The position numbers and the translations under genes are program-made. The notes under the pieces were generated by a model, which was not told the origin of the DNA, ran no database searches, and saw nothing but the letters and a program-made list of their open reading frames with translations. Shown here piece by piece: positions 567 to 63,394 of a DNA stretch of 64,000 nucleotides (within the stretch, counting starts at the first letter, position 1; each line of letters starts with the position of its first letter). This stretch comes from Haliotis cracherodii (lineage: Eukaryota): assembly GCF_022045235.1 (NCBI RefSeq), contig NW_027266286.1, forward strand, positions 42,160,001-42,224,000, given 5' to 3'.

Positions 567-3029
567 TCAAAATGTTGAATTTTGGGTCCGGTTCATTAAT
601 GGGTTCAATGTAGGGTGGCATCTGTCCTTCGGTGAAGTCGTTAACGCCTTGCACCATCAACATCACCAACTCTGCAGCAGCATCGACGTTGTTGGGGAAC
701 TGACCTTCATGTTCAGACTGGTTCATCCAGTTCGGCCAGTTTAGAGCTAAAATTAATAATACAACGGAACAGGACACTGATTGATGAATGAAATATCTCA
801 GTTTCTTCTTCTGAATCACGTCTGTCAGTTTTATGATGCTTATTCCTTCTTAAAAATATATTTTTCCTCCACGAATCATTATCAAGAAAAAATAAATGAG
901 TCCCCTATGCTTTTCGACCGTCTTGTCTCTTATTGTCTCTAGTTTTGCGAAGCACCTAATTTTGGCAATAAATGGTATAAATCATTGGAGAGTATTGTGT
1001 AAGTTAACTTCATTAAACAGTTCCTTTTTACACCTAACGGTGTTAATATTGCATGTTTTAATTCGAAATTTTATGTAATGTCCTTTCTCAACAACATTTA
1101 CTACAAATATATCATATCTCGCCCGGACAAATAGTGCAATATTCATTTGATGTTTTGAAACAAATTTTAATGAAACAGTTATGTGCAACGTTGTATCCTG
1201 GTATAATTTGATAACTAAAATTACATGTAGCATTGTAAGTTTAATGCGTTTGGGTTAGAGTAAAACTTAACTATACATTTATTCGTTTCCAAAGTTGAAG
1301 TGCTTCACAATTCCCCAACAATGATGCACTATTCGTTCTCAACAAGACCAAAGAATTCCTTACAATACTGTGGAAAAATGTTTTGCGTATTGGACTGTTT
1401 TAATCATTGTATTTTTCTATCTTTTCCTCAGTGCATAAATACTGTCGTACCTCTCGAACTCATGATCACGTCGTTTTCGTAACCACTGTTTATGTTAGCA
1501 AGGTACAAGGAAAACAGTTCCTTCTGCTTGGTGGCATTCTTCAAGTAGTTGGGATCTGGATAGCCACTTCTGTTGGGGTCCTCTGGCCACTGAATTTAAT
1601 ATTCCATCAAGAAAACAGTTAGGAGAGAAACATAATGTGTCTTCCAATTTGAAGATGTTATAGAGTATTTACACCTTCAAATAACATTTATCATAATTTT
1701 TTGAGCATCGTGTACACATTACCATCCGCACATCTTTAAAACATGAAATCTACAACATTAAAAATACAACAGCAGTCTATTTCTAAGTATATGCAATGTG
1801 CGAATGGTATGGTGTCAATGCTTCCACGACGAATTTTCCCTTCTTGAAAGGAGAAGGAAACAAATAATGATAGCGGTATTGTAAGTCGGATGCTCAGTGC
1901 CACATTTTCCAAAATCGGATTATGATACCCATCAACAAAGTATCCATTCACTGTGTGAAAAGTTCCGAAGTTCGGGGTTCAAATCCCATTTAACAATGTT
2001 TTTCAACCAATCAGATTGCAGCACATGCTCCCATGCTTTCTTTTACAATGTATAAATTAATTTCAGCAAAATAGCTGAAATCATGAGATGCAGAACTCCT
2101 TACTATGTTTAGTGGTTGTGAAGAGACTGCAGTTGTTTAAGAAGTTAAAAGACTTCATGGATAGACATTGACTGTTTAAATTACTAAGACGACCGAAAAC
2201 AATTAACGTTTACACTGTATTCTCATTTCAAACTATTGTGTCATTAACCTTTTGTTCAATATTACTCAAAAAGAAAAGAAAAGCAAAACGGATATTTTTT
2301 GCCATAAGTAGGTAAGGTGGTAATTAAGGCAACATATGCCTGAACTGTCAACATATTATGAGAAGAGATAACCATGTGAAATGAATAGATTCCATAACTG
2401 TATAATTCTCACGGGATCATCAACATGTTCATGTTCAACAGGTAAGTAAGTGGTATCTGGTATTAAGTATAATATAATAACACATCTTGGAAAAGATTGT
2501 AATATAGCCCATTGTTATTTCAGCGCCCGCCGTCAGTTCGAATGCTCCGACAATTGGGAATAGTATATTCACTTTTATTATCACTGCTAAGGCCTCAATA
2601 TAATGAAATTATCACCATAATTTGCTTTCTCTCAACAGTATTTCTCGTTGTTGAAAATTAATTTATACCAATACATTGTCTCACTGATTTGCTTTCAACT
2701 TGATAGTGCCAAATATATCTTTGAACAATACTAGTGACAACTTTCAATATTAAGTAATATATTCAGTATTATTCAAAGGTTGATCTTACGTCTTGGAAAA
2801 GGCGATCATTATAATCTCTGTTATTCCAGCGTCCACTATCAGTCCGAATGCTCCGGCAGTTTTGAATGAGGGATGTGCTATCCAGACCATTGTGTTTGTT
2901 CCACCTGTTACTGTCATAGCGAGCACTACCTCCCTGTGCCAACCATTGAGGGTGGATCGTTACCGTCGCCTCACTGTATAGACCATCTATTGACAGGCTC
3001 AAAGTGAAACAGACCAGTGTCCATTTCAT
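567..3029 (-). pseudogene. GH86-like beta-porphyranase/agarase copy A, interrupted in exon 3; exons 3029-2790, 1589-1451, 746-567(broken)
   Basis: Near-identical to copy C. Exon 1 MKWTLVCF...RLFQD|gtaaga; exon 2 cag|WPEDPNRSGYPDP...IMSSR-G|gtacga; exon 3 tag|ALNWPNW...YIEPINEPDPKFNIL then foreign sequence and a stop at 556. Confidence 0.85.
2483..2565 (-). pseudogene. dead 3' half of an exon 1 (IPNCRSIRTDGGR*NNNGLYYNLFQD) inside intron 1 of copy A
   Basis: Translates like the exon 1 C-terminus with an in-frame TGA and a lost donor. The same relic occurs at about 31420-31503 in copy C. Confidence 0.8.
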
Positions 3030-4309
3030 TTTCTGTGCAATGTAAAGTGAAGGTTTAATCAAATGAGCACTGGATTGTGACCTTAACGAAAACGACATAT
3101 CTGACTATATTGATATAATGTCAATGAAGCAACAGATACATACAGTTGTTCAAATGATCAAGTATTATCGCAAGTAAAACATAAACCCAGACGAAAGAGA
3201 CGTAATGATATTACAGGTATTTTTGTGGATAACAACTTTCCTATTATTTGCACCAACGTTTCAGGGCTACATCCTGTCTCATCATCAAATAGTATTTGTG
3301 TGTGAGATATTATAAACATGCATACATGCTAATTTGTGTATTCCGGGTAGACTACTGTTCAAAGATAATGTATACGCTTTAACACATTGCACCTGAAGAC
3401 GTCGGGAAACGTGTTACAATATTTGACAATTTGTTGGTTCAGACTCAAAACCCTGCATGTCTTCATATTCTTCCAACATTTAAATTGTTTTTAAAAATAA
3501 CCATGGACGTAGAGTACATGTTAATGATATTGTAAAGAACAAGCTTCCCAAAAAGATGCAAAAATTATGAGTGCAGCCCTTATTTAGAAACCGTAGAGAC
3601 AGGAAATTAAGATCCTGATCGGAAACTAATTCATGACACATCCGGAACGTGAGCTGCAACGAATTATTTATTAAAAAAAACACATAAGCAACTCACGTGT
3701 ATGAAAAAGAGACAGAAAATAGTGGTGCTTTGGGGTCCCAATAGACACACCATCTATTCAAGTATTGCCTTTTCATAATGTCAACTGCCTGTCGATTATT
3801 TCATTTGATTCCTTTTGCCAGGAGTTGTCGGATTTTAAGCCACGCTATTAATTCTTGATACGACCCAAGCTGTTTGACCCCACATTCATATGGCAACACG
3901 GATGTCTCTATACTCACATTAAGCATTTCCCAAATCTACCTGGGTATCAACACACTGCCTTCTTACAAGGTTCTGTCGACACTCAATAGCTGCGTGGCGA
4001 CCAGTTTTATACATTGTCATGATATCTTCTTATCGTATCTGGTCAAGAATTTGAACGTGCGTTCCTTTGGACCAGATGGTTGTTTCAGTCAGTTTTCGAC
4101 TTACCTTATCGCTACATATACTCCCCTTAAAAAGAAACACATATGCCGTTTTCAATAGATTCTTTCTGTGGCGTTTACAAACTTTAACGGATAGTTTTTT
4201 GCATGGTTTCATACAGCATGACAGAAGCAAAGCCTAGTAGCATGTGTATTCGCCATTGTTAAGGACTTCACGACACTTCCTGCTTAACAAACCAAGAAAC
4301 CTGCGGATA

Positions 4310-9367: not shown

Positions 9368-12300
9368 TTATCCTTCTGATGCATTATCAGATGACACAAG
9401 CTTGGCTGTGACAAGCGCAACTGAAGAAACATACCCCACTGTCATGCTGTCAGAGAAGTGGAACTGTACCAGGTTAGACCCCATGACAAAGAGGGAGGTA
9501 GGGACAGCAAACTCCCAAACTTCCCAATAGGTGGTGCTGTTAAACTTGTCGGAATCATACAGCTTATAGAACGAGTCAAGGGGGTTGAGGTTAAAGGTAA
9601 CATACGATACATTGTTTGTTTCATTGATCGGCCAACTGGTTGAAACTCTTAATCTTGCACTGTGGTATTGGCCATTTGGTAGATTTATGTCAGTCAAAGC
9701 GATTTTTTCTTTGATTGGTACAAGAATATCAGTGCCGTAGTATGTAGTTTCGTTGAGAGTGACAGTAGGTAGTTGGTCTGAGGGGGTCTTGAATGTCAAG
9801 TGACATGTTGCCTCAGGGGGAAGTTCAAACATTCCTTGTGTCTTCTGAATGTTAAAGGGCTCGTTGAAGGTCATGATCGGATACCATTCGTCCTTGATGG
9901 TGATGCAAGTAGCTTCTCCCCTGGCTGGTTTCATCCATTCGTCCTTAAAGTCAAGCTTGACTGTTTGCAACTTCTGAGAATAGCTATGTAAGAGAATGAC
10001 GGTTTCGTTATGCAGGGAACTGGACATTGCTAAGGGAGACACGGTTCGTTCCTGTCCATTATATTGGCTGGTTGTTCTGATAAAAGAATAGTCGGACGAG
10101 AATTTGTACCAAAATTCAAAGACGTCGACAATGCGTGTAGCGTTTCCTTGAAGAGTGAAAAGTGACCAGTTGAGACTATCATGTCCTGGATATTTTTCAT
10201 TGTCTAACCGAAACACCACTGTTCTGTCAATGTATTCCCTTAGACTGAGTTGAGTGAATCGGTGGGCATTGCAATGGTATATTGTTGAGAAGTCTACTAT
10301 ACCTGATGGAGCAAATTTGTCAATTCCTAACACAATATCGCGGCCATATTCACTGATAACAAGGGGGATAATCTTCCCTTTCTTCTGAGAGGCATAACTT
10401 TCAACCAAGTCGACAAATGCTATAAGACGTGCTTCATTCATGCCAGTGAGATTGTGAGATTTGCCTGTCACGATGAGTGAATTGTACGAATGAAAAGAAA
10501 ATGCATCTAAATAGTCTAATGTGACGTCCATGAAATATGCCACTTGTTTCCAGTACGAAAAGTCGTTTCTATCTGCTGACCCCGTTTCGCCGTCAAGTGT
10601 AGGCCCAAACACTTTGATGTTAAATCTGGCATGGAGTTTCTCCGCAACTAATTTGTGGAAGATGGCAACAGTCGTAAAATTCCAGATGTCAAGCTTAGCA
10701 TCCGGTTCATTTATGGGCTCGAAGTAGGGTGGGATCTCTCCTTTAGTATAGTCATATACTCCTTGCATCATCAACACTATGAACTCTGCAGCAGCATCGA
10801 TGTTGTTGGGGAATTGACCTTTATGTTCGGACTGGTTTATCCAACTCGGCCAGTTATGAGCTTAAACCAATGATATGATGGAACATGAAACCAACATACA
10901 AAAGAAATTAAAAACATCTATGTGCTTTCGATAAGAATATGTTCAATTGTGTTTGATGTGTTTCCTTTTTAAGAAACATAATAATTGACCAATCTGATTA
11001 TTATGTACGGTGGAATAGATTGTGTGTGCTAAATTGCTTTTAGGCATTTGCCTCCAAATATACTTCTCCACCTTTGACAGTGGCATTTGTTTGTTTTTCA
11101 TGATATGCAAAACTGTTTCTCATAATGTGTCAAGGATATTTTAAAAAAAAATGACATATCTGATCAAAAGTTGAATAATATACATTAAATGCCTCTGCAA
11201 ATCTCCCATAATTATTTTTTTACAAACAAATGCATCAATGATTATGGAGTGTTGGTCTTTCAATTTACTCGAGTTGTATGATGTGGTAGGACGCGCTCAC
11301 CTGCCCAGTGAATGAGTAGCCTATATTTTGTTCAAACTGTTCTTGTGGTAAAATGTTTGCGACAGAAATACAAATCTGAATACACATAAGATCTTCCGTT
11401 TTAAATATACTTATTAAGCTATTAAATTGTCTTACCTCTCGCCATCAAGATCATTTCATTCTTATAACCACTATTAATGTTAGCAAGGTAGTTTAAGAAG
11501 AGTTCCTGCTGTTTGGTGACATTCTTCAAGTAGTTGGGTGCAGGGTAGCCACTACGGTTTGTGTCCTCTGGCCACTGTATAATTGATAAATGAAAATAAC
11601 GGTTTGTTATGATCTATATATGTCAACGCAAAGACTTGAAACGTTATGGATAACAACTTCTTAATTGTTTGTAACAACGCGCCAGGGTTACGTCTTGTCC
11701 CTTAATCATCAAAGACATGAAGAAACGTTATGGATATTAACAACTTCGGTATTTTTTTCTCCAAACAATATTTTAGAGGTTATAGTTGTTCAACTCAGCA
11801 CTCAGGAGTACTTCAGCTATATATGGCGCCAGCATGTGAATGATCGAGTCTAGACCAGACAATGTAGTTATTAATACTATGAGCAACGATCCACGCCAGA
11901 GGCGTACATTGACACGCCATCCACCAAGACAGCGAGCCTGATCAACCGATCCATTAAGTCGCCTCTAAGCTTACGAACCCCTTAGGTTGTTACGGACTAA
12001 TGCTGACCCAGAATCCACACGTATAGGCTCTTCAAGTAATAATTGTTAATCCTAATACAAAAAGGCATAAACCACTGCCATATGTATTAAGTACAAGGAC
12101 AAAACAAAGAATCGCATTAGAAAGAAAATCTCACATCTTGGAAGAGACGATCACTATCATCTGGGTGTATCCAGCGCCCACTGTCAGTCCGAATGCTCCG
12201 ACAGTTTGCGATAAGGGACTCCTTTTCCAGGCCGTTATGCTTGTTCCACCTGTCACTCTCATAGCGAACTCTACCTCCCTGTGCCAGCCACTGAGGGTAG

Positions 12301-12374
12301 ATCGTCACCGTCGTGTCACTGTTCACACCGCCTATTATCAGGCTCAAAGTGAAATAGACATGTCTCCATGTCAT
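9368..12374 (-). CDS. secreted GH86-like beta-porphyranase/beta-agarase, copy B (623 aa); exons 12374-12135, 11574-11436, 10860-9368
   Basis: Signal peptide MTWRHVYFTLSLIIGGVNS. GT-AG junctions at phase 0 and phase 1 give one open frame of 1872 nt. Clan GH-A motifs YFEPINEP, DAFSFHSY, PLVISEYG; C-terminal beta domain ARLRVS...GSNLVQFHFSD...GYVSSVALV. In-frame upstream ATGs (e.g. 12407) are possible starts. Confidence 0.85.
11800..12022 (-). mobile_element. family 1 short retroelement, diverged, in intron 1 of copy B
   Basis: ctcagcactc..cagctatatggcg..cgagtctagaccagacaat..gcgagcctgatcaaccgatcc..agtcgcctct is the reverse complement of the 7968-8232 family. Confidence 0.7.
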
Positions 12375-17929: not shown

Positions 17930-19810
17930 CGGTTAAACAAACGTTGGTTCACCATTAGGTTCTGCGTGGCAAGTGACGATGAAACGACAGTGGACTCATG
18001 TCGCACCAGTGGGCAGTGCTTGTCATCAATGGAAACCACCAATGGGATCCAAAAGGAAGCAATGGGAACCAATAGACCAACATGATCCTTGCCCAAAGAT
18101 GGCAGCATGCATTCCCCAAATGATGCCTACAACATGAGGTCCAACGAACAAACCGAATAAAACGACCGTGGTTTAAGAGTTTGTATTGGTTTGTTTGGGC
18201 CCAATTAACTAATGTTGAGTTGTTCCGCCATGGCTGCAATGCCATCATATCGAACAATCTTAAACCCTGAATCCATGAGCATGTCATTCTCATAACCACT
18301 GTTGATGTTCTCAACATGCTCGGAGAACAGTTCCTGCTGTCTGGTGACGTTCTTCAGATTGTTGAGGTCTGGGTGGTCTACAGATAATATGCTTATGAAA
18401 TTAGTAGAATTGTTTTCCACTTAGTGTCATTTTGTGAACATTCGTCAATGCATATTTTCACGGATATTTACTCTCAGTCTGAAACCTGTCATGTGGCGTC
18501 AGGAAGTTGATTTTCCTGATATTGATTAATCTGAGTTTGATCTGAATAGCAAAGGGTCACTGCATTCGCGAAATGGTAGTATTAAATGAATATATACCAT
18601 TACATTATCACCATATCTTGCTTTCAACTTGATGTCAAATATAGCTCAGAACAAACCTAATGACAGCTGTCATTTGGAAGTAACATTCAGTATTAGTTGA
18701 TCTCACGTCTTGGAAGAGATGGCCGATATTCCTGTGCCCACAATCAGTCCAAAGGCTCCTGCAGTTGCAAATATGGGACATCGATCAAGACCATTGTTCC
18801 TCCTATTACTGTCATAGCAAGCTTCCCTGTGCCAGCCATTTAGGGTGGATCATGACAGCTGTACATGTGTCACTGTATACACCGGCTACACCGGAAAAAA
18901 GACGTGTGTCCATTTCATTTTCAGGAACAAATATCCTGTTTAATGAGTGAGTGAGTGAGTTGTGTTTTTCACGCCGATTTTAACATCCTGTTTAATGAAA
19001 TTATTTATTTACAAAACGCTGATATGGGTTCATTTCATTGATGAAAACTATTTACGATTAATCATAAAACACCTATCATCATTGTCATACAAATGGATAT
19101 GGTTTAATATGATTTAAATCATATGATCCATACAGTTGTACAGATGTCCATATCAATTACATGTTATTGTAAGTATTTTGTACATGTCATATTTTACAAT
19201 ACTACATTTCTACTATTACAACACTGACATCAAATAGAAGATTTATTAAAGAATTTTAGATATATATATATGCCTTTGCCATAATCACTGGTATCTGAGA
19301 AATGACAGAATTACGGATTCAACAAATATTTGAGATGTGACCCCTGAGTGCTAGGAGTCTTTAATATTGCATTGCGACGCCTCAACGATTCTCACTTTCT
19401 TCACTAGCTTGTTTTAAAAAACCCCAGTAAAACCTGTGAACCTAAACAATATAGTCTGTGCCAAATGGGTTGTTAAATGGCAAAGACTCGGGTTCTATTC
19501 CCCACAATGTGTGAAGCCCCTTTTCCGGTCTCCCCCGCCGTGATATTGCTGGAATATTGCTAAAAGTGGCGTAAAACCATACTCACTCACCGTGCCAAAC
19601 GACATTCAGCCTAACATGAATATTTACAAACAAAAGGAATACTCACGAGATGGTTCAGGTTCAGATGGCCATCTCTACACTCCACACTACGATCGAGTCT
19701 TTATAGTTAGATTTCATAAAAGATTATCGGTGACCTTTGACACTACCGTTTTATCAATATTTGTAAATGATGATAACATGCCTCAGTATGTAGGTGTGGT
19801 GATTGGGTTG
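17930..19810 (-). pseudogene. truncated D-like pseudogene: promoter and non-coding exon (~19650-19810), decayed exon 1 (~18707-18918), partial exon 2 (~18266-18378); exon 3 absent
   Basis: Exon 2 remnant HPDLNNLKNVTRQQELFSEHVENINSGYENDMLM. Exon 1 has many indels. Intron 2 sequence matches copy D 37120-37390. No exon 3 is found between 12.4 and 17.9 kb. Confidence 0.8.
19478..19591 (+). mobile_element. tRNA-derived SINE (family 3), 5' eroded
   Basis: gggttctattccccacaatgtgtgaagccc..ccgccgtgatattgctggaatattgctaaaagtggcgtaaaacc..ctcactcac; copies at 44219-44378 and 61378-61540. Confidence 0.75.
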
Positions 19811-23981: not shown

Positions 23982-23986
23982 GTGTT

Positions 23987-36929: not shown

Positions 36930-36981
<52 letters not shown>

Positions 36982-38287: not shown

Positions 38288-38944
38288 TTCCTGTAATAAA
38301 TATCATCTTTAATGTAACGATTACAATATGGTGACCTGGTTTCATTTCACTAATCTATTTACTATTAACCATAAAAGAGGCTCTCAAGTCAATATGATGG
38401 ATAAAGTTATACATGTCCATTTCAATTACGTGTTATTTTAAAAGGCTTTCCACTGAGCTGTGTTATTTATATATTTATTTATTTATTCTTTAAGCAGCTG
38501 ACGTATGGCACCGCCCCCCGGCAACTAAAATATACATTAATGAATCCCATGTACACTTACATACTTCCTATACATGCAGAGTATCTACTACTTAAAATGG
38601 CTCCATTTGGAATAGCAACTTGCATTGTAACAACAGTATATCGTATTCTTTGATTAAACTTAAATTTTCTTTTCAAACAAAGAATTATATTTATCAATTA
38701 AATATTGAATTTAATTTTTCTCTCCACCGTGGGCATTCCGGGTTAGAATAAGCGTGGCAACCTATGTTGGTCATAACATGCGACTTATTGGCTCGGGTAC
38801 TTGGTTGATTGTGTGTCATCGTACAATAAGGCGTGCATCGTTGCGCGCGATATCAGTCACTGAATTGTCTAGTCAAGATTCTAATGTTTACAGGCCGCCG
38901 TCATACAGCTTATACCAGTCCGAATGCCGATTATAAAGTATAAT

Positions 38945-42257: not shown

Positions 42258-45200
42258 TCATGACTTTAAATCAGTTTGGACAAACTTGGCTGTAACAAGA
42301 GCAACTGAAGAAACATGTCCCGCTGTCATGTTGTTAGAGAAGTGAATCTGTACTTGGTTAGGCCCGGTGGCAAACAGGGAGGTTGGGACAGCAAACTCCC
42401 AGACCTCCCAAAAGGTGGTACTTCCAATCATGTTGGCGTCATACAGCTTATAGAAAGATTCAAGGAGGTGGAGGTTGAAGGTAAGATATGATACACTGTT
42501 TGTTTCATTAATCGGCCAACTGGCAGAAACTCTCAGTCTGGCACTGTGATATTGACCATTTGGTAGAGCTATTACTGTTAAGGCGATATTGCCCTTGATT
42601 GATATAAGTGTATCAGCTCCGTAGTATGTGGTTTCATTGAGTGTGACATTAGGTAGTTGGTCTGAGGGGGTCTTGAATGTGAAGTGACATGTTGCTTCAG
42701 GAGAAAGTTCAACAATTCCCTGGGTTTTCTGGATATCGAAGGTTACATTGAATGTGATGACCGGGTACCATTCGTCCTTGATGGTGACGCAAGTAGCTTC
42801 TCCAATGGTTGGTTTGATCCAGTCGTCTTCAAAGTCTAGCTTGACCACCTGTGACTTCTGAGAATAGCTATGCAAGAGAATGACGGTTTCATTATGTAGG
42901 GAACTAGACATTGCTAACGGCGACACCATTCGTTCCTCTCCATCATACTGGCTGGTAGTTCTGATAAAGGAGTAGTCTGGCGTGAATTTGTACCAGAACT
43001 TGAAGACGTCGATGACACGTTTAGGTCGTCCTTGGTTAGTGAAAAGTTGCGAGTTGGGAAAAGGATATTCATTATTGGCTAAAAGAAACACCACTGTTCT
43101 GTCAATGTATTCCCTAAGACCTAGTTGGGTAAATCGGTGGGCATTTGAGTGGTATATTGTTGCAAAATCTACTATTGCTGATGGAGCAGTTGGGCTTATT
43201 CCTTTCACGATGTCGCGACCATACTCACTGATAACAATGGGGACAATCTTCCCTGTCTTCAGAGAGGCATAATTTTCAACCAGGTCGACAAATGCTACTA
43301 ACCTTGCTTCATTCATCCCAGTGAAATTGTGAGATTTTCCCGAAACTATAAGTGAGTTGTACGAATGAAAGGAAAACAAATCTAAATAGTCTAAAGTGAG
43401 GTCCATGAAATTTGCCACTGTTTTCCAGTCGGTAAAGTTGTTTCTGTCCGAATTTCTGGCGAAACCATCAAGTGTGGGACCAGTAACTTTTATGTTAAAT
43501 CTTGCATGGAGTTTTTCCGCAACTGATTTGTGGAACGTGGCAACTGTTGTGAAATTCAAGATGTTAAATTTGGTGTCCGGTTCATTCATGGGTTCAATGT
43601 AGGGTGGGATCTGTCCTTTGGTGAAATCATAAACTCCTTGCACCATCAACATCATGAACTCTGCAGCAGCATCGACGTTGTTGGGGAATTGACCTGCATG
43701 TTCGGACTGGTTCATCCAACTCGGGAAAAACAAACCTGTAAATAGCATGAGAAAAAACACGTTCGTAAATGAACACAAAAGAAACGGTTTTCAATACTTG
43801 AAGCCTCAAATGTATGGCCTAATTAAGAATGATATATCATTGCCAAAGTCATCATCGCGTCTTGATTTGTTCTTCTGATTTATGTGTTTCAGTTTTATTA
43901 TACTTAGTACTCTCCAAAAGAAATAGATTGTTCTCTTCAGAATTTTTATTATCAAGAAGCATAACATACCACATGCCTCTCGACCTTCTTGATCATAGTG
44001 TCTCCTGTTTTGTAAAGCACTTCATTTAGGCCAAAAATGGTATAAATCATTGGAGCGTGTTTTGTATTTTGAAAGTTCGCATCATCAGATAATTCCTTTC
44101 TACAAGTCACTATGTTACTATTGTATGTTATAATACGACCTTTTCTGCAATATCCTTACTTAAGAAAATCAAAAATAAGAGTTTGAGTTACAGTATTTCA
44201 GCCATATAGCGATTATCGGTGAGTGAGTGGTTTTACGCCGCTTTTGGCAATGTTCAAGGAAAATCACGGCGGAGAACACCAGAAATGGGCTTCACACATT
44301 GTACCCACGTGGGGAATCGAACCCGGCTCTTCGGCGTGACGAGCGAACGCTTCAACCACTGGGCTACCCCACCGCCCCTCGTGACTATCAAATGGTATGC
44401 ATAATATATACATTTAAACAATAAAAGCCTCTCAACAAAGGACAGTAAAATAACTAGAACTTCACAGATTTAAGTTTTAAACTAGCATACAACCATGAAA
44501 AGATAAAACTATATATAACAATATAATATAAAAACGGCCCATAGATCGCCAGCAACGAAAGGTATTTCACCATAATAGGGACAATGGGGACTTACAGTAC
44601 CTTTGATGCCTGTATGGACCCCAGCAGGATTTACATCATCCCTGTTGTCGATTATTGATCAATTTAGCCAAACATTAGGACAACACATGTGACAAAAATA
44701 AAACTACTTTTATAGGGGTGGTCTTACATACCCTCGCAGGGGGACAATACGTTTACACTACTTCAACCTCCTTCGAGGACACAGCCTCTAAGAATCTCAG
44801 TTATCAAATTATAAAAAAATAGTCCTTGATTATATCCAAAACATGTCAATCAAAATGTCTTGACCAATTCTATTTCTTTAAAAAAAACCACCAAGAATTA
44901 AATGAGAACTGATATAATTGTTAAAAATATCATTTAGGGATGAAACTTTTAGTTGTCCCTTGTGATGGAAAATAAACATAAATAAACAATATATTGCCCG
45001 CTCATAAAGGAAGATATTCATTTGATGTTGTGAAACAAATATCAAATGAAACCGTTATGTACAACATTGTATCCTGGTATATTTGATAACACTTGTTTGT
45101 GTATTGGACTATTTCGATATATTTTGGTATTTTTTCCCTTTTTGGCTTTGTGCATTGATACTGTCTTACCTCTCGACATCATGATCATGTCGTTCTCATA

Positions 45201-46615
45201 ACCACTGTTAATGTTAGCAAGGTACAAGGAAAACAGTTCCTTCTGCTTGGTGGCATTCTTCAAGTAGCTGGGATCTGGGTAGCCGCTACGGTTCGGGTCC
45301 TCTGGCCACTGAATTGAATATTTATTTTATCAAGTAAACATCCAGTTAGGAGAAGAACATGATGTGTCTTAAGGAGTTATTAAATATTCACACCAAGAAA
45401 ATACAACCGCAGCCTATTTCTAAGTATGTTCAAACTGCTGTGAGGCTTTGGTGACGTCTCTGCGGAATGGTATGGCGTCATACGCTTCCATGACGACTTT
45501 CACCCAGCTAAATCTGAAAAGCAGTTTTTTCTGACAAGTATTAGTCACGCCCATTAAATAACGAATTCTAGTTCCCATGTCCAATGTCATGTTTCCAAAT
45601 TTGGATATGATACCTATGAACTGAAGTAACCATACGCAATGAAAAGTTCCTTACTACATGTAGTTCAAATCACATTTAACAGCGTGTTGCAACCAATCAT
45701 AACGCGGCACATGCCCCCATTTGTTTTGCAATGTATGTTAGCATAAATATCATGTCGGCAGAATAACTAAAATCACACGATGTCACACTTCTTCTTATGT
45801 TCAGTGGTTGTGAAGAGACTGAAGGTTTTTTTACATGCAATAACGTCCCGTGGATAAACAATTACTGATTACATTACTGACAGGTCTTTAACAATTGCCA
45901 TTTACACTGTATTCTGATTTGTTTGGCTGTATAAAGTTATAAAAAATATTCCACTTAGTGACATTTTGTAAACATTTGTCAGTGCATATTAACAAAAACA
46001 TTTATGTCAACCTGAACAGCAGCGAAACTATGGCATCAAGATTTATTTGGTCATTCTTATTTACAGTTGTATTGACATTATATTTTCATTTCTGCTGTTG
46101 CATGTGGGCTATTGTTTGAAAGTAATTGTCTGTCAGTTCAGTAGCTAGGTTTAGTAACACGTGCCTGCACAGCAGAAAAATATTTTTGCAACACGATATT
46201 TTAAGAAATATTGAAGTTCTTCCTGTTGTTTAGATCTCATTTGAAATGAAAAGATTATAAATAATAAAGTATAATCGTCACTGAACTTTCAATATTAAGG
46301 TCCAATATCTCTATAAACAAATTGAATGTATTATCAAGTAAGTAGTATCTGGTATTATGTATGCGGTGATCTTACATCTTCGAAGAGACGATAACTAAAG
46401 CCATTGTTATTCCAGCGCCCAGCGTCAGTCCGAAGGTTCCGACATTCGGGAATAAGGGACTCCTGATCAAGGCTATTGTGCTTGTTCCACCTGTTACTGT
46501 CATAGCGAGCACTGCCTCCCTGTGCCAACCATTGAGAATGGATCGTCACTGTCGTGTCGCTGCACACACCGCCTATTGACAGGCTCAAAGTGAAATAGGC
46601 CAGCATCCATTTCAT
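42258..46615 (-). CDS. secreted GH86-like beta-porphyranase/beta-agarase, copy E (618 aa); exons 46615-46376, 45308-45170, 43735-42258
   Basis: Signal peptide MKWMLAYFTLSLSIGGVCS; canonical splice sites; open 1857-nt frame; YIEPMNEP, DLFSFHSY, PIVISEYG. Confidence 0.87.
44178..44975 (-). mobile_element. 3' end fragment of an I-group LINE in intron 2 of copy E, with a nested family 3 SINE (44219-44378)
   Basis: Matches 21151-21800 (ggggacttacagtacctttg, aggatttacatcatc, aattctatttctt). Confidence 0.75.
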
Positions 46616-46678
46616 TTTCTGTGAATTGTAAAGTTCACTGGATTGTGACCTTGGCGTAGTGTCGAAGACTATATATCG

Positions 46679-48364: not shown

Positions 48365-49065
48365 GATACCTTGTGTAATAGCAGCTCATTCTTCCCTCAG
48401 GCCACTGCAATCAATATACCCATTTGTAAATACTCATCAATGCATATTAGAATGGACATATACCGTCAGCCATAATAGCAGCCATAATGTGGCGTCGAGT
48501 TTGGTATATTCTCTATCTTTGTCAATGGTAAAGATGCTGAAATGTTGAAATTAATTACGAACATTACAAAATTCAATATATTCTTATTTAAAAGATTTGC
48601 TTTTATTTTTGTTGTAACATGCTTGGCAATATTCTTCATGTTTTTTCGCACTTCGACATTTCTGTCAGTTCATTAGACATCTAATCATGAAAAAACATGA
48701 CATTGTGTCTAAAGTACTTCAAATATATTTTTTGTAGGCATTCTAAGACAAAAATGGATTTGTTTTTTTTCTTGATATTGATGAATATGATTTTAATCGA
48801 AATAGCAAAGGGTCACCAAGGGTCTTAGCGAGCACTACCTCCCTGTGACAACCATTGGGGGTGGATCGTTACGGTGGTGTCACTGTATACACCGCCTACT
48901 GTCAGGGACAAAGTGTAAAAGACCTGTATATACGGTGACCTGGTTTCATTTCACTGACGAAACTTATTTAACATCAACTATAAAACGGACTTTCAACATT
49001 GTCATTTATGGCTTAATATGATTCAAACAGTTACACTTGTCAATATCAATTACATGTTATTATCC
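48365..49065 (-). pseudogene. relic D-like family member (intron 1, 5' half of exon 1 at ~48826-48922, 5' UTR intron); leftover non-coding exon at ~50140-50205
   Basis: tagcgagcactacctccctgtgacaaccattgggggtggatcgttacggtggtgtcactg encodes SDTTVTIHPQWLSQGGSAR. Flanks match copy D 38325-38440 and 39365-39430. Confidence 0.75.
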
Positions 49066-52533: not shown

Positions 52534-53987
52534 TACTGAGCCGAAAAAGAAACGTCAACCCAAGTAACATTGCATGAAAAGTTGTCATTTAATATCTGGG
52601 TAATTTTTATCAAAGTTTCTAAGATTTAACATTACCTTGTCCGGAAAAATGAAATTTGATGATAAAAAGACGACAATAAACCCGATCGCCCAAACGCATT
52701 ACGGCAAAGGCCATGGTAACCCGATGCACGTGAGTTCCGTGCAAATTGGAATGCACATGCGTTCCCCCATTTCTTGCCCTATAATAGATCGGATAACATT
52801 CATTCGTTATTGAATTGCTACCACATGCCAGGATTGACAAGAAATCAGCAACACCAAGCCCTTGGATGATTGAAACCGCCCGCCAAGCAGCCAATGCATT
52901 TCAAGTTCACGTGAGGATCATATACAGGCCACCAACACTACAGATGACCGACCACGTAGTGGAAGACCAAGGGTCACCAGCTGACATCAGGATTGTCAGA
53001 TTGTGCCGCTGCATCTTCAAGATCGCTTTGTTACTGCTGCGGAAGCTGTTCGACAGACAATGGGAACACATACATGTAATAGCGACACATACATGTAAGT
53101 GCGGACACCGTGCGTCGACGATTGACACCTCCACTGTCACAGGCCACACCGAGGACCTATTCTGACACAACGTCATCGCCGGGACCGTCTTCAGTGGGCA
53201 ACACAGCACCAGCACTGGCGCCAACAGCAGTGGAGAAGAGTCCTCTTCTCAGACGAGAGCCATTACTGTATCTCAACAGCAGATGGCACATAGAGAGTCT
53301 GGCGACGCCGTGGAGAACATTATTCAGATGCTTGTGTTGTTGAGAGACTCGTGGGGTGGTCCGGGCATCATAGTGTGGGGTGGAATTGATCTTGCACAGA
53401 GGATCGGCCCTGTGGTCTTCCAGAACATCGGTCCAGGGAGAGGCAATGGTGTCACAGCAGCTCGGTACATTGATCAAGTCTTGAGACCACACGCCCTCAT
53501 TTGCCACCTCGCCGCAACCAAGAATTTCAGCATGATAACGCCCGTGCCCACACTGCGAGAGCAACAAGAGACTTTCTTCAGAAGAATGGCCTAGAACCAT
53601 GCAATGGCCTGCCCTCAGTCCCGATTTAAATCCCACTGAACACATGTGGGACGAGACGGCTGAATGATGTCCGACCAAGGCAAACAACTGCAGCTGAACT
53701 GCGTCAGGCGTTCCTCAGAGTGTGGGCTCAAGTGCCTATGGCCTTCATCAACCGCCTCATCCATTCCATGTATCGACCTTGCACGGCAGTAATCAATGCA
53801 CATGGCGAACACACGAGATACTGACTAGCGTTGTGTTTAAGAACATTTGACACTTTAATTTCAACCTTGATGATAAGTTTTTCCAAGTTTCATCTTTTTA
53901 ATATGTCTCAAAGGATGTTTACAGTGTTTGGACAAATAAGGTTTCTCATATATCTATCCATGGTGACGTTTCTTTTGCAGTTCAGTA
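52534..53987 (+). mobile_element. full-length but frameshifted Tc1/mariner transposon
   Basis: TIRs tactgagccgaaaaagaaacgtca / tgacgtttcttttgcagttcagta in a TA context; motifs DRPRSGRPRVT, GGPGIIVWGGI, HDNARAH, SPDLNP.EH.W. Confidence 0.87.
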
Positions 53988-54330: not shown

Positions 54331-57300
54331 TCATTTAATGTCAGATGGGACAAGCTTGGCTGTGACAAGGGCTACCGCAGTCACATATCCTTCCGAATCT
54401 TTGTTGGAAAAGTTAACTTGGACCGTGATTGAAGTGGTGTTCAACAAGGTGAAAGGGACGACAAACTCCCAAACATCCATGTAGTTGAAGATTTTACTGT
54501 TCTGTTTGTCTGAGTCGTACAGCTTGTAACAGGGGTAAAGAGGTTGGTGGTTAAAGGTAACAGATGACAGACTGTTTGTTTCATTGATGGGAAGACTCGC
54601 AGAAACTCGCAGTCTCGCGCTGTCGAATTCATCTTTTGGAAGAGCTATGCTTGTCACAGCGATGCTGTCCTTGATGGGTATAATCATATCAGCTCCGTAG
54701 TATGTTGTTTCATTGAAAGTGTCTCTTGGCAACTGGTTTGAGGGAATTCTGAATGTATAGCGACATGTTGCTTCAGGTGGAAGGTCAACCATTCCTCCAG
54801 TATTACCGATGTCAAAGGGTTCGTTGAAGGTGATAATTGGATACCAGTTGTCCTTGATGGTGATACAAGTAGCTTCTCCTGTGATTGGTGTTATCCAGTC
54901 GTCTTGAAAAATTAACTTGACCATCTGTGATTGTTGAGAATAGCTGTGTAAGAGAATGACCGTTTCATTACGTACAGAACTTGACATTGATAGCGGCGAT
55001 ACCGTTCGTTCCTGACCATCACATTTGCTGGCAGTTCTGATGAAGGAGTACTCTGACGTGAAATTGGACCAAAATTTGAATACATCTGCATTCCTTGAGG
55101 CGTTTCCTTGGCGGGTGAAAAGTGACCAGTTGGAACCATTATTTCCAGGATCTTGTTCACTGCTTAAAAGAAACACCACCGATCTGTCAATGTATTCTCT
55201 GAGACCAAGATGGGTGAACCTATGGGCATTAGACTGGTATATTGTTGAAAAGTCAACTATCCCAGATAGAGCAGTTTTACTAATTCCTATCACTCCATCG
55301 CGACCATATTCACTGATAATGAGTGGGATTTTTTCCCCCTTCTTTTGATGAACATAGCTTTCAATCAGGTCAACAAATGCTACCAGGCGTGCTTCATTTA
55401 TACCAGTAAATCGGTGAGATTTCCCTGAAACAATAAGTGCGTTGTACGAATGAAAGGAAAACACGTCTAAATAGTCTAAAGTGATGTCCATGAACTCTAC
55501 CAGTTTTGTCCAGAACGAAAAGTCGTTCCTGTCTACCACTGTGTTATATCCCGTCATTGTCGGGCCAACCACTTTGATGTTAAACCTGGAATGGAGTTTC
55601 TTGGCAACTGTTTTGTGGAAAATGGCGACAGTGGTGGTGAAATTCATTATATCCCCTTTAACATCTGGTTCGTTGACGACCTCGAAGTATGGCGGAATCC
55701 GACCTTGAGTGTAGTCAAAGACTCCTTGCACCAGCAACAATATAAACTCTGCAGCAGCATCGATGTTGTTGGGGAATTGACCCTTATGATCGGACGTATT
55801 CATCCAGTTTGGCCAGTGAAGACCTAAAATCAATAATACAACATAAAACTGATTGATAAATACATATGCCTTTTCTATAAGAGCTTACGCATATATTTCC
55901 GTTTTAAAGACAAACTTCATCACTGTTTCCTTGACGCGATACAGGACGTCAAGCTGGCGATAATATACGGCTATTAAGTAATTGCTGTGCTGTGTAATTG
56001 CTGCGTACTTGCTGTGCAATCAACCAAATAAGACAAAGGCCGCCTGCTCTTGTATTTCCTTAATACAATCAATGAAGGACTATCTTTATAGTGAATTTCA
56101 CAGAAAGTATTTGAGACAAGTTGATTAATATTATGTTGAATCTTATTTCATTTTCAACTCTGTACACCACTATCCACCACTGACAGACTGAAGGTAAAAC
56201 TCATTCCTTGATCCATGGGACTTTTTTTAATAACGTGGTGACCATAGATATAGTCACATGTCTATTTTAAGAGGTTCAGGTCAATTTGTCAAAAATGAAA
56301 GCAAATGAAATCTGAAGTTTACTGCAAAAATATTATCTGAAATGCTGGACATCTTTATTGATAATATTTATTTAACATTTTGGGAAAAAACATTCAGGCA
56401 AGAAGTAGGCATCACCATAGTCACCGATTCCGCTCCCCTCCTTGCTGATCTGTTTCTTTATTCATATGAATCAAAATTTCTGCTCGGACTGGCAAAGTCA
56501 ATCCAAGTTAATTTGGCCAGGAACTTTAACATAAACTTCAGGTATATAGAAGATCTGATATCGTTCAATAACAGTCAAATTGCCAATTCCCTTACACCTA
56601 TACTAGAAATGTAGGCGACCAGTGAGACCGCCTCATCTGTTTCATATTTGGATCAACACAAAAAGATTCTGAGTGAAAAAAACACTTTCAACAAGACTGT
56701 ATGACAAGAGGTATGACTTCACCTTTTCAAAAGTCAACATATCCTTTATTTCAAAATTTTTGAGGTGCAATCTAGCATACTCTTTCTAGCAAGATTTCAA
56801 AGAGCTATACAACTCTTGCCCACAGGTTGTTTGATCAAGGTTACAACATTCAAGGCCTCTGTAAAACTTTTAGAGGGTTTTATGGAAGGCAGACATGTGG
56901 AGGACATTTCAAAATTTGACAAAAATAAGTGATAACAATTATGTCTGATGCAATGCTCTATTTTGATTTCTACCCTATGTTCACGTTGTTTTTTTCAAAT
57001 GAACAATAGACTTGCCTTTGCATGCGTTTGTGACGGATGCCACCGGTGGCGCAGAATATGTTAACCTCTTCGCAAACACCTTGTATTATCACTATTTGAT
57101 ACTGATTCATAAACACATGGTCATGATATACCAGTAGTCGGAAACGTACAATCGAATATTAGCAGATATTGCTTATGAATATGGAGAGGGTTTTGTCACG
57201 TTAAATTTATAAGTAGATTAATCTTACACCTATCATTTGTAACTACACGTAAAGTACGTCCAGGCGATTTTGGGTTATTTTCTACCATCTGCACATCATT

Positions 57301-60065
57301 TGCTTCTCTCCTTCACAGAGGTCATAACATAAGAAGGCAATCTAATATGTGATCTTGACGTCCATGCATGATGTGTGATAGAGCAACTGCCATATATAGG
57401 TGCAATATCTATCGAACGCCTGACTTCGTTATTGCAGTGATTCGTGAGTGCATCTAATCTTCGAATTTGTCTTTTACTATTGTGACGGGAAAGAAATATG
57501 AATCTCTCTACGTCCGTTTTAATAATATTACCAATCAAATAACAGCATTTGTTTCTGAATATTCTTACCTTTCATCATCATGATCATTTCATTCTTATAA
57601 CCACTGTCAATGTTAGCAAGGTAATCGGAGAACCATTCCTGTTGCATGCTGACGTTCTTTAGGTAGTTGGGGTCGGGGTAGCCACTTCGGTGTGCGTCTT
57701 CTGGCCACTACAATCAATATGCTTATTAGGCAAGGAGAATGTTATTCCAAACAGTGCTACTTTGTGAATATTCGTCAATGCATATTAGCTTAAACATTTA
57801 CTTTCAGTCTAAATAGGGGTCAGGGTACCCTCTTGCCATTGTATAATTAATATATGAAAATTTGGGTTTAGTATAATTAATCGCATATCAATGACAATTC
57901 ACTGTTGTGCAATGTTTCCCAGTAATATCTTGTATCATGCATAAAAGGAAAAGGTTAATTCAATAATTGTCCAGTCATTTGTTACCTGTTCACTGGCAAG
58001 TGTACAAGTCCATATTAGTCTTAAGTAATTACTTCATTTGTATGAGTGGATACGACCATGGGGCATCGAGCAATAATTGTCTATCCCAATTAAAGAAAGA
58101 CAATGACTCTAAAACATAGTGTTTATTTCTTAGCAGGAGAATTGGCCTCAAAACATTCATCCCACCACATTCATGCATTTATCGTATGCAACATCACTGC
58201 AGCTCTATAAATGTTAATTAATGTCTGTTTGCAATATTCATGACATTACTGTCAAAACGAACCCTCGAAGCCATACATTACAGGATGAGCAAATGAAAGA
58301 CACAGAAATGCTTCATGTTTTCTGTCTCAACTGCCGGGCAGAAGACCCTTATCCCCTTGCACCGCAGCTCCATAAAAAGAAACAAAAACAGGTGAAGGTT
58401 ATTTTAATGAAAGGAATCATTTTTAATGTCTGTACATAATGCAATTCTATATCGATAGTGCACTTGCCAAAAGTCCGAGCGAAAGAGACACGGGGTCAAA
58501 ATGAAAAAAATACGTAAAGACGAGTCCACTTAAAAGGTGCTCATAAAGTCAAATCATGTGACAAGACATGTCCCTAGTAGCGTGTGTGACCACCCCCTGC
58601 ATCAATGCGCGCCAAAATAGTCTCCTCATGGATGCCGTTGGTCGCCGGATGACTTCATTAGGAATTCTGCGCTACTCATCCAATAAAACCTGTTCAAGCT
58701 GCTGTCTGTTTGCTGGGGGAGATACGCGTTGTCTCATCTGTCGATCACGATGATCCCAGAGATCCTCTATGGGATCCATGTCTGGAGAACATGCTGGCCA
58801 AGGAAATACGTTGACGTTAACGTTGTGCAGATATTGCTGAACACGTCTGGCGTGCATTGTCCTGCTGCAAAAGGGTACCCCTTGCCCGTCCACGTAAGAA
58901 TGGCACTAGAGGAGATCGAACACCTCATCTCTGTATCTTTGGCCAGTCAGATTCCCACGGATAATGACAAGCCTTGTTGTCCTCTGACCGCAAATACTGC
59001 CCGATACCATAACGCTGCCTCCTCCATACGGCTGCTCATCTTGGATGCAGTGAGGTGCCAGTCGCTCGCCCCTACGTCGATAAACACGGACTCGGCCATC
59101 ATTACAGAACAAGTTAAAGCGACTTTCATCTGGGAACAGCACCCTTTCCAAATCACGCCGCTGCCACCGACGTACAGGTTTTGCCCATTGTAATGCGTTG
59201 ACGTAGAAGATGGATCAATGCCGTTCCACGGAAGGGGCGGTAGGCTCTGATACCACCAATGCAGAGTCATCGTACGGGTGTTCATCTGCTGATGTGGTGT
59301 CCCATTGCCGTCGCTGCCGTTGACGTCGCCGTCACGTATCGGATGTAGCGGTCTTCAACTGGTGTTGTGACTCTTTGTGTCTGGTCTATTTGCTGATACA
59401 GGCTCAACTAGTTGCTCATACTGGTTTGACTGCAGTTAAAGGTTCTTGCAATCTGCCGTTGAGAGGCCCCAATATCGGCTATACCAACAGCTCTATCATG
59501 TTCCTCTTGTGCTAGTATCGGCATTTCTCTGCTGTTCTTTTTGATGCTGCATCCTTCCTCTACCCCACACCGGTATTTATGCAACAATTATGCACGAACA
59601 CTTTTCACAGTTCCCCCAAATCCTGTTTTTCCAATTTATCATGACCGCACTTCACTCACTAAAACGTGACTTTCATTGTGCACATGGTGTGTGTTGGTGA
59701 ATGTTTTCTGATAACATTCTAACTTATCGCTCTTATCGCCTTTTATTCAGTGATACGTTTCTTTTGCCCGGCATTTTACAATGTGACTTATTACGATAAT
59801 ATAAAGGATCGAATTAGAAAGAAAATCTCACCACTCGGAAGAGAGTAAAATCTTCGTGTATCCAGCGCCCGCTGTCAGTCCGAAGGCGGCGACAGTTTGC
59901 AATACGGGACTCCTTTTCCAGGCCATTGTGCTTGTTCCATCTGTCACTCTCATAGCGCACACTACCCCCCTGTGCCAGCAACTGAGGATAGACCGTCACA
60001 GTCGTGTCACTATATACACCACCTATTACCAGGCTCAGGGTGAGAATGACCAGTGTCAATTTCAT
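54331..60065 (-). CDS. secreted GH86-like beta-porphyranase/beta-agarase, copy F (621 aa, most divergent); exons 60065-59832, 57707-57569, 55823-54331
   Basis: Signal peptide MKLTLVILTLSLVIGGVYS; splice sites gtgaga/tag and gtaaga/tag; open 1866-nt frame; YFEVVNEP, DVFSFHSY, PLIISEYG. Confidence 0.85.
56130..57090 (+). mobile_element. decayed Penelope-like retroelement RT fragment in intron 2 of copy F
   Basis: FIDNIYLTF..FRQEVGI....SAPLLADLFLYSYE..FRYIEDL, SVSYLD, LYDKR.DF.F motifs. Confidence 0.7.
58328..59775 (-). mobile_element. decayed Tc1/mariner transposon in intron 1 of copy F
   Basis: TIR-like tgccgggca(g/a)aaga at both ends; VLFPDESRFNL, YGGGSVMV, WPACSPDMDPIEDLW. Confidence 0.85.
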
Positions 60066-61540: not shown

Positions 61541-61916
61541 ATTTTCGGGGTCAATTATCAGCTTCACGTATCCTTCAAAGTAGCGACATTGTTTCTTTTA
61601 TTGATTTTTGTTGCCTACATGCACGTCGAACTGATCAACAGTCCTTCTATAGGATGGCAGCCTGTAAATAACCATGTCATACTCAAACAGGTAAGACTAA
61701 CAGTTCTTTGGTGTATGTGTGTACATTATATGTACATTGTAGACAGTTACACAAACATAATTACAACCGACATAGTATTCAAGCTAAGTACAACACCAGC
61801 TGTTCTTAAAAATAAATATGCGACCTGGGAATATAACAACAATGACACTTTGATGTAATTTGTTTAATACTGTCAAATTTGAGGAATTTGTCAGAAATAG
61901 TATTATTTTCATGATT

Positions 61917-63394
61917 TCAAATCGGTTGGGTAAGCTTGGCTGTGACAAGAGCAACTGAAGAAACATATCCTGCTGTCATGTTGTTGGAGAAGTAGACCTG
62001 TACCAGATTAGCCCCCGTTACAAATAGGGAGGTAGGGACAGCAAACTCCCAAACTTCCCAATAGGTGATGCTTTTAAATTTGTCAGAATCATACAGCTTA
62101 TAGAAACAGTCAAGGCGGTGGAGGTTAAAGGTTATATATGATACATTGTTTGTTTCATTGATCGGCCAACTGGTTGAAACTCTCAGTCTTGCACTGTGAT
62201 ATTGGCCATCTGGTAGAGATATGACTGTCAAGACGATATTGCCCTTGATTGGTATCAGTGTATCAGCTCCGTAGTATGTGGTTTCGTTGAGAGTGACTGA
62301 AGGCAGTTTATTTGAAGGGGTCTTGAATGTAAGGTGGCATGTTGCTTCAGGTGGAATTGTCACCATTCCATGGGTCTTCTGGATGTCGAAGGGTTCATTG
62401 AAAGTGATGACTGGGTGCCAGTCGTCCTTGATGGTGATACAAGTAGCTTCTCCAGTAGTTGGCTTGATCCAGCCGCCTTCAAAGTCTAACTTGACCGCCT
62501 GTGGCTTCTGAGAATAGCTATGCAAGAGAATGACAGTTTCGTTATTCAGTGGACTTGACATTGCTAACGGCGACACTGTTCGTTCCTCTCCATCATACTG
62601 GCTGGTAGTTCTGATAAAGGAGTAGCCTGACGTGAATTTGTACCAAAACTTGAAGACGTCGACAATACGCGTGGCGTTTCCTTGAAGAGTGAAAAGTGAC
62701 CAGTTGAGACTATCATGGCCTGGATATTTTTCATTGGCTAAAAGAAACACCACTGCTCTGTCAATGTATTCCCTGAGACCTAGTTGGGTGAATCTGTGGC
62801 CATTGGCTTGGTATATTGTTGAAAAGTCCACTATACCTGATGGAGCATATTTGTCAATTCCTTCCACGGGACCGCGACCATATTCACTGATAACAAGGGG
62901 AATAATCTTTCCAGTCTTCTGGGAGACATAGTTTTCAACCAGGTCGACAAATGCTACCAGACGTGCTGCATTCATACCAGTGAAATTGTGAGATTTTCCC
63001 GAAACAGTCAGCGAGTTGTACGAATGAAAAGAAAATACATCGATATAGCCTAAGGTGACGTCCAGGAAATTGGCCACTCTTCGCCAATACGAAAAGTCTT
63101 TTCTATCCGCCAGCCCAGTTTCTCCATCAAGTGTAGGACCAGAAACTTTGATGTTAAATCTCGCATGGAGTTTCTCAGCAACTAATTTGTGAAATTTGGC
63201 AACAGTCGTGAAATTCAGTATACGCCCTTTACCATCCGGCTCGTTGATGGGCTCAAAGTAGTGTGGCATTTGTCCTTTTGTGTAGTCATAAACTCCTTGC
63301 AGCATCAACATCATGAACTCTGCTGCAGCATCGACATTGTTTGGGAATTGACCTTTGTGTTCAGACGTGTTTATCCAACTCGGGTAATAGAGAC
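61917..63394 (-). CDS. GH86-like beta-porphyranase/beta-agarase copy G, exon 3 only (exons 1-2 lie beyond the right edge)
   Basis: Acceptor tttttcag|gtctctattac (G-LYYPSW); YFEPINEP, DVFSFHSY, PLVISEYG; open to the stop at 61917. Confidence 0.85.

Follow-up and report, generated by a model that had tools for sequence, protein, structure and literature searches.

Outside the genes described here, glycoside hydrolase family 86 (GH86) is a family of agarases and porphyranases from marine and gut bacteria. The described members closest to our genes are the agarases BuGH86 of Bacteroides uniformis (5TA1/5TA5/5TA0) and Aga86A_Wa (8H97) and the beta-porphyranase BpGH86A of Bacteroides plebeius (4AW7). 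Abalone possess digestive carbohydrases of their own: the host origin of their alginate lyase transcripts has been reported (PMC6181387), as has a GH45 cellulase (PMC11025796). The degradation of agar and other red-algal polysaccharides in abalone is credited to gut bacteria (PMC5870069, PMC6181387), and a 2020 survey of molluscan glycoside hydrolases makes no mention of GH86, agar or porphyran (PMC7560691). We found no paper on an animal GH86 in the open full-text literature, a coverage that leaves out subscription journals.

Here, we analysed a 64-kb stretch of the Haliotis cracherodii genome (G000:C23:42160001-42224000, hereafter the window) that lies on a 76.75-Mb chromosome contig and carries seven intron-bearing copies of a GH86 gene. 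These genes are spliced, expressed and of a secreted type, which makes it probable that red-seaweed galactans are cut by the abalone itself as well as by its microbes. A large, expressed and selectively maintained host GH86 family would shift part of galactan breakdown from bacteria to the animal.

Array and gene structure

A tblastn search of the window with the exons of one copy returned seven GH86 gene copies (A to G), all on the minus strand. Five of them (B to F) are complete, without internal stops; the seven co-oriented and five complete copies claimed in a preliminary description of the window, made from its letters alone, are thus borne out by the search and by the exon borders that we read. 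The window contains no N stretches, and the G+C content of the region (0.34-0.46) is host-like. According to a six-frame search of the genome, the surrounding array spans about 42.07 to 42.26 Mb, and the window is part of a tandem array of about 180 kb with about 20 copies. The genes are already annotated, with the RefSeq name "beta-porphyranase A-like".

We determined exon borders by mapping the protein models P0001, P0003, P0004 and P0035 onto the window and then reading the borders. Exons were searched singly, and full-length work was done on these four database proteins, which are 96-100% identical per exon to the window copies. Each gene has three coding exons, and the introns are GT-AG throughout, in phase 0 and then phase 1; the same structure recurs in every copy, as described earlier. 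Exon 1 measures 231-240 nt from the ATG and ends in GAC before the donor gtaaga or in GTG before gtgaga. Its product has a signal-peptide-like start (MKWTLV...G/DTTVTI). The signal peptides of the preliminary description are supported to the extent that inspection and a low-confidence N-terminal helix in the structure model indicate a hydrophobic N-terminal leader. Exon 2 is 139 nt long in all copies, opens with TGGCC after cag or tag, and closes with AG before gtaaga. Exon 3 (1478-1493 nt) is preceded by tag or cag and entered in phase 1. In copies A, C, D and E, the letters ..AAAATG or GAAATG follow immediately on an AG acceptor (32170-32173, 38288-38292, 46619-46623), and the RefSeq-derived P0001 has three extra N-terminal residues that are not encoded beside exon 1. 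Together, these observations suggest a further upstream exon and an intron near the start codon, in the 5' untranslated region or the first residues.

The five complete copies run as follows on the minus strand. Copy B (9368-12374) has exon 1 from 12374 (or from an ATG at 12407) to 12135, exon 2 at 11574-11436 and exon 3 at 10860-9368, and is 96-100% identical per exon to P0004. Copy C (27023-32167) consists of exons at 32167-31928, 29338-29200 and 28509-27023; over exon 3 it is 99% identical to P0001, and the best database match of this exon is an H. cracherodii RefSeq protein with 99% identity. In copy D (34420-38287), which matches P0003 at 99-100% per exon, the exons occupy 38287-38048, 37529-37391 and 35903-34420, and in copy E (42258-46615) they occupy 46615-46376, 45308-45170 and 43735-42258. 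The most divergent complete copy, F (54331-60065), has exon 1 from 60065 (or from an ATG at 60089) to 59832, exon 2 at 57707-57569 and exon 3 at 55823-54331, with 99-100% identity to P0035 over exons 2 and 3. The remaining two copies lie at the edges. Copy A (568-3029), which is disrupted, has exon 1 at 3029-2790, exon 2 at 1589-1451 (donor GTACGA) and the first 179 nt of exon 3 at 746-568. Copy G (61917-63394) has only exon 3 in the window; its exons 1 and 2 lie past the window end, and exon-1-like matches occur just to the right in the genome search. The bounds of 567 and 63394 first given for the array are real landmarks, since exon 3 of copy A ends at 568 and the acceptor of copy G is at 63394.

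Family assignment and catalytic residues

Exon 3 of copy C alone retrieves GH86 structures from the PDB (phmmer; 4AW7 3.8e-9, 5TA1 1.5e-8). For a more sensitive comparison we used profile A2, made from 18 mollusc sequences only; an earlier profile, A1, included bacterial sequences, which rendered its PDB matches partly circular. Profile A2 matches 8H97 (1.3e-34), 5TA1 (6.7e-34), 5TA0 (about 1e-33) and 4AW7 (1.1e-25) over profile positions 73-610 of 613. Outside GH86, nothing in the PDB scored below 0.01 with A2, including GH39, GH30, GH5, GH79 and GH51.

The AlphaFold (AF2) model of P0003, the product of copy D, has a mean predicted local distance difference test score (pLDDT) of 87.4 and a predicted template-modeling (TM) score (pTM) of 0.88. 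In this model helices and strands alternate to about residue 376 and are followed by an all-beta portion to residue 616, consistent with two sandwich domains. The top seven Foldseek matches in the PDB are all GH86 (TM 0.73-0.80, 640-665 aligned columns), while structures of GH30, GH39, GH51 and GH79 reach only TM 0.38-0.50 at root-mean-square deviations of at least 6.5. We rejected membership in GH39, GH30, GH79, GH5 or GH51 on the missing A2 matches and TM values of at most 0.50; Pfam matches to GH5 and GH39 are weak, partial and centred on the common NEP strand. A better match to GH39, GH79 or GH30 than to GH86 was looked for and not seen, in agreement with the family first proposed. Pfam searches with exon 3 alone or with full-length proteins of the window clade gave only sub-threshold matches (CBM-like, CUB_2, Cellulase).

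The catalytic motifs point the same way. Residues N177-E178-P179, E297 (in S-E-Y-G), H250 and Y252, numbered as in P0003, do not vary in an alignment of 23 sequences that includes abalone and bacterial ones, and NEP and SEYG are kept in window copies B-G. The abalone motifs align to NEP and to ISEY/ISEF of 8H97, 5TA1 and 4AW7; in 5TA0, a nucleophile mutant (E322Q), the Q aligns on the Glu of the abalone SEYG. The other motifs listed in the preliminary description (DAAAE, SFHSY and more) are present as well, with NEP, the E of SEYG and the H and Y of SFHSY being those invariant from molluscs to bacteria. In summary, GH86 membership holds, and the model and alignments predict the acid/base Glu in NEP, the nucleophile Glu in SEYG, and a (beta/alpha)8 barrel with two C-terminal beta-sandwich domains, as in clan GH-A.

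The likeness specifically to porphyranases of the BpGH86A type did not survive this comparison: the abalone proteins are no closer to BpGH86A than to the GH86 agarases, and 8H97 and 5TA1 score above 4AW7. Since neither profile nor fold brings the abalone proteins nearer to the porphyranase than to the agarases, the RefSeq term 'porphyranase' is a label only and not evidence for the substrate.

Expression and selection

Contigs from four sequencing runs (four organisms, three studies) were aligned to copy D only. They cover its three exons, with zero depth in the introns except for one repeat-like bin. In all four runs, contigs link 38048 directly with 37529, leaving out a segment bounded by CT..AC on the plus strand (GT..AG on the gene strand), and join the last base of exon 2 (37391) to the start of exon 3, where eight letters are replaced, as expected for contigs of paralogue or orthologue origin. 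Stretches of 120-256 nt in several contigs agree with copy D letter for letter. We read these runs as spliced transcripts because DNA runs would cover the introns too. The spliced transcripts proposed earlier as a check on the array can therefore be seen, as joined exons at the predicted splice sites of copy D. Only one intronic bin, at 36766-36902 in intron 2 of copy D, has depth, with values of 16-364 across the four runs. Its contigs extend into 255 letters of sequence that does not resemble the window, which suggests a dispersed repeat with transcription elsewhere. The bin adjoins a (GT)n/G-run microsatellite (36925-37003) that was skipped in the read comparison.

Exon 3 is open in six of six copies (B-G), with pairwise dN/dS of 0.17-0.28 at dS 0.29-0.94, and each copy of this exon carries 9-11 N-x-S/T sequons. 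The genes are under purifying selection, and they are transcribed and spliced.

Family size and age in abalone

The six-frame genome search gave 71 scored matches among 205 candidates, about 50 of them to full-length exon 3, on contigs C23, C80, C4, C25, C1 and C12; the genome holds at least 50 GH86 loci. Nearly all full-length exon 3 matches begin at query residue 120-133, which places intron 2 at a site common to all abalone subfamilies, the deep Haliotis subclades being 35-48% identical. The tree of the window subfamily places copies B, E, F and D/G apart from one another, each grouped with proteins of H. rufescens, H. rubra or H. asinina (FastTree support 0.85-0.99), and orthologues are found in four Haliotis species. 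The main duplications are thus older than the divergence of the sampled Haliotis.

Relatives outside abalone and origin

A HMMER search of 1.84 billion representative proteins returned 139 matches at E <= 1e-3, only 11 of them below 1e-30. Haliotis and Mytilus (five species) are the only named sources of the matches below 1e-30, the others being Logan/ENA proteins. No other animal, fungus or plant was found in this exhaustive search of representative proteins. P0105, a transcript fragment of the choanoflagellate Diaphanoeca grandis, also matches the mollusc GH86. Scanning metagenomes with Mytilus P0079 gave no match. All 40 named genome loci belong to marine bacteria (Planctomycetota, Verrucomicrobiota, Kiritimatiellota, Lentisphaerota and Bacteroidota) at 22-33% identity.

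We built two trees, an 86-row mixture-model quick search and a 44-row LG+G4 careful search, neither with a fixed root. All mollusc sequences (Haliotis, the five Mytilus species and mollusc-like contigs) form one clade, with 100 in the Shimodaira-Hasegawa-like approximate likelihood-ratio test (SH-aLRT) and with 100/100 for ultrafast bootstrap (UFBoot) and SH-aLRT. The stem of this clade is long (0.63-1.08), and the inner backbone that orders the Mytilus and Haliotis subfamilies has a support of 51-79. A protist transcript and a metagenome protein join the mollusc clade, to the exclusion of all named bacteria. The transcript, P0103 from EukProt, has a Mytilus GH86 as its best database match (9.5e-26; next relative 3.4e-6) and groups with the molluscs at 100/100; it is full-length and reads LNECD in place of NEP. 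The metagenome protein, P0118, belongs to a cluster made up mostly of metagenome contigs plus a Picozoa single-cell assembly; the C-terminal end of P0118 matches GH3 weakly, below threshold. The tree analysis flagged both P0103 and P0118 for long branches and deviant composition.

The introns bear on the timing. In four short, independent mytilid-type open reading frames (ORFs) from ENA/Logan genomic contigs, homology extends to ...FQN and is followed by V and unrelated residues, which is what reading through a GTN donor at the site and in the phase of abalone intron 1 would give. P0120, one of these ORFs, shows 89% identity to exon 1 of M. californianus. In the Logan protein P0098, homology begins at the start of exon 3. 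One mollusc clade and a shared intron 1 site argue that the intron-bearing gene is older than abalone. Judged from these sequences, acquisition and the gain of at least intron 1 would predate the split of Haliotis and Mytilus, or else a gene already carrying its intron passed from one mollusc to another; of these events, amplification alone is specific to abalone. Several GH86 models of Mytilus galloprovincialis (P0095, P0231 and P0235) lie on one 134-kb contig, so that the mussel family is also tandem, and it is far less amplified than that of abalone. The preliminary description had placed capture, intronisation and amplification in an algivorous mollusc. Amplification stands, but capture and intron gain in that lineage do not, given Mytilus in the same 100/100 clade with the same intron 1 site.

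Transposons, relics and repeats

The disruption of copy A is due to a long interspersed nuclear element (LINE) whose 5' end lies in exon 3 (window 1-567, minus strand). The full-length element of about 6.2 kb lies mostly to the left of the window, at G000:C23:42154347-42160567 (L041:1845-8068), and encodes an ORF1 of 437 aa and an endonuclease-reverse transcriptase ORF2 of 1215 aa, both open. Copy A exon 3 resumes at G000:C23:42153027-42154343, where it encodes aa 187-625 and is 95% identical to P0001, and residues 187-190 occur on both LINE edges, consistent with a target-site duplication. Because both ORFs are open and its DNA is only 76% identical to the window LINE at 21-27 kb, the element may be young and possibly active. 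Copies A and C, including their 3' flanks, are about 95-99% identical, a similarity that points to a recent segmental duplication.

The second element, a non-long-terminal-repeat retrotransposon between copies B and C (21678-26244, minus strand), comprises an ORF1-like part (26244-25348), an endonuclease (25351-23987) and a reverse transcriptase with RNase H (23981-21678); Pfam identifies RVT_1 (1.4e-36), RNase_H (1.4e-7) and Exo_endo_phos_2 (7.7e-23). The animal transposons said to lie in the introns are indeed there, as DDE_3 transposase remnants in intron 1 of copy C (30350-30769, plus strand) and of copy F (58672-58893, minus strand). Relics of a decayed copy occur on the minus strand at 18268-18889, with an exon-1-like piece (18889-18707, 40% identity) and an exon-2-like piece (18375-18268, 64% identity), and a lone exon-1-like fragment (53% identity) occupies 48822-48974 on the same strand. 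In copies C (31514-31422) and A (2561-2484), intron 1 contains a partial duplicate of the exon 1 3' end, with 58-69% protein identity. The stretch at 52600-53700, between copies E and F, is raised in G+C (0.44). Long ORFs without a Pfam match overlap there on both strands, and the stretch is probably another repeat.

Discussion

We propose that a bacterial gene entered by horizontal transfer, that introns were gained before the gastropod and mytilid-bivalve lineages separated, and that massive amplification followed in the abalone lineage. The secreted, N-glycosylated GH86 proteins would be released into the gut, where, from family chemistry, they would act as retaining endo-beta-1,4-galactanases that cut the agar/porphyran-type galactans of red algae to oligosaccharides and loosen the cell walls. 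To the whole of this reading, a secreted, agaran-cutting GH86 array of abalone that derives from horizontal transfer and bore introns before the gastropod/mytilid split, we assign a probability of about 0.65. The assignment of agar/porphyran-type galactans as the substrate class, made by analogy, is favoured by a somewhat smaller margin. A bolder version holds that molluscan GH86 is older than the gastropod/mytilid split, possibly as part of a wider eukaryotic lineage including a protist, and that abalone, with at least 50 genes, harbour the first animal-encoded system that depolymerises agar/porphyran-type galactans and digest red seaweed independently of gut bacteria. We advance it tentatively, at slightly less than even odds.

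Several findings weigh against the proposal. The structurally aligned identity to characterised GH86 enzymes is only 17-19%, which leaves the substrate a prediction. P0001, P0003, P0004 and P0035 fall below the Pfam thresholds for PF18206 (Porphyrn_cat_1) and PF18040 (BPA_C); among other Haliotis paralogues, P0041 reaches 33.5 bits for BPA_C (cut-off 26.2) and P0083 reaches 26.5 for Porphyrn_cat_1 (cut-off 27), and Mytilus P0079 is just under the cut-off for the GH86 accessory models. Mytilus, a filter feeder that does not graze on red seaweeds, has the gene, which weakens the link to macroalgal herbivory. The RNA nature of the four runs is an automatic guess. Finally, the mollusc clade falls outside the named bacterial groups, with the protist transcript and the metagenome protein, on their long branches, as its nearest kin; direction and timing of the transfer are for this reason inferred, and the trees single out no donor.

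The alternative that survives best, which we consider possible though unlikely, is that these are real, expressed GH86-fold hydrolases with another substrate, such as a beta-galactan or sulfated glycan of microalgae, biofilms, detritus or the animal's own matrix. The filter-feeding habit of Mytilus, the low identity to characterised enzymes and the sub-threshold accessory models all fit, and the more than 50 paralogues in deep subclades suggest diversified specificities. On the other hand, the GH86 structures recovered by our searches are agarases and one porphyranase (8H97, 5TA1, 4AW7), and the cleft-forming three-domain architecture is kept. To our knowledge, GH86 has no activity other than agarase and porphyranase, and many abalone species eat red algae.

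Less likely still is an old eukaryotic GH86 lineage, inherited vertically with widespread loss or passed between eukaryotes, in place of a transfer from bacterium to mollusc. It would account for P0103 being the closest non-mollusc sequence, joined to the molluscs at 100/100 against all named bacteria, and for the match of the Diaphanoeca grandis fragment P0105. The deviant composition and long branches of P0103 and P0118 tell against it, as do the bacterial sequences that protist transcriptomes and single-cell genomes often carry and the mostly metagenomic make-up of the P0118 cluster; and with no other animal, fungus or plant found in the exhaustive protein search, very many losses would be needed. 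Bacterial ancestry is favoured and plausible because all other family diversity that we found is bacterial and no other animal appears. The bacterial origin first proposed thus draws support from the fact that every other named relative is a marine bacterium, but the clade itself lies outside the named bacterial groups.

We regard it as improbable that Haliotis and Mytilus acquired the gene independently from related donors or by transfer from mollusc to mollusc. The distribution is extremely patchy, with no named match among molluscs outside these two genera, and the inner backbone of the mollusc clade is supported at only 51-79. However, the four mytilid-type ORFs share the site and phase of abalone intron 1, P0098 is homologous from the start of exon 3, and no bacterial sequence falls inside the mollusc clade. 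Independent bacterial transfers would not yield the same intron site, whereas a mollusc-to-mollusc transfer of an intron-bearing gene would. Bacterial contamination, misassembly or dead pseudogenes can be dismissed: the LINE-broken copy A and the exon relics at 18.3-18.9 kb and 48.8-49.0 kb are all that speak for them, and all three readings are refuted for copies B-G by splicing, open frames and intact borders, and more generally by spliceosomal introns, animal transposons, a G+C content of 0.34-0.46, dN/dS well below 1, spliced RNA contigs, the location on a 76.75-Mb chromosome and orthologue groups across four Haliotis species, in keeping with the host origin claimed from the outset.

If the proposed transfer and amplification are real, abalone hold an unusually old and heavily amplified microbial-type carbohydrase for an animal, and the date of the transfer can be tested directly through the intron that abalone and mussels have in common. 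The array would also provide a concrete gene set for aquaculture nutrition, and a family valued in the production of agaro- and porphyran-oligosaccharides would gain a eukaryotic, glycosylated branch. Abalone gut extracts are used to make seaweed protoplasts, and the array may explain their red-algal wall-degrading activity.

Comparison with known systems

BuGH86 and Aga86A_Wa share the three-domain fold of the abalone proteins (TM 0.78-0.80), a near full-length profile match (E 1e-34) and the positions of NEP and SE(Y)G/S. The abalone proteins differ in being 17-19% identical to these agarases, in having introns, a eukaryotic signal peptide (by inspection), 9-11 sequons and more than 50 paralogues, and in lacking an operon setting (polysaccharide utilization locus), a carbohydrate-binding module (CBM) or extra modules. 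BpGH86A, the source of the RefSeq name, has the same GH86 fold and catalytic motifs, but it lies below the agarases with the mollusc profile (1.1e-25 against 1e-34) and in fold (TMq 0.73), and no sulfate-accepting pocket is evidenced in the abalone proteins.

The alginate lyase, GH9 and GH45 cellulases, mannanase and laminarinase of abalone and sea hare are likewise host-encoded, secreted digestive carbohydrases of algal grazers; they act on brown-algal or common glucans, and none of them on red-algal galactans. Wall hydrolases that other animals gained by horizontal transfer (beetle GH45 and GH5_10, nematode GH5 and GH45, invertebrate GH32) are also microbial-type carbohydrate-active enzymes with gained introns, tandem amplification and a dietary role. 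They differ in enzyme family and substrate class, and the acquisition of GH86 now found in abalone appears to be far older than the herbivorous lineage that amplified the gene.

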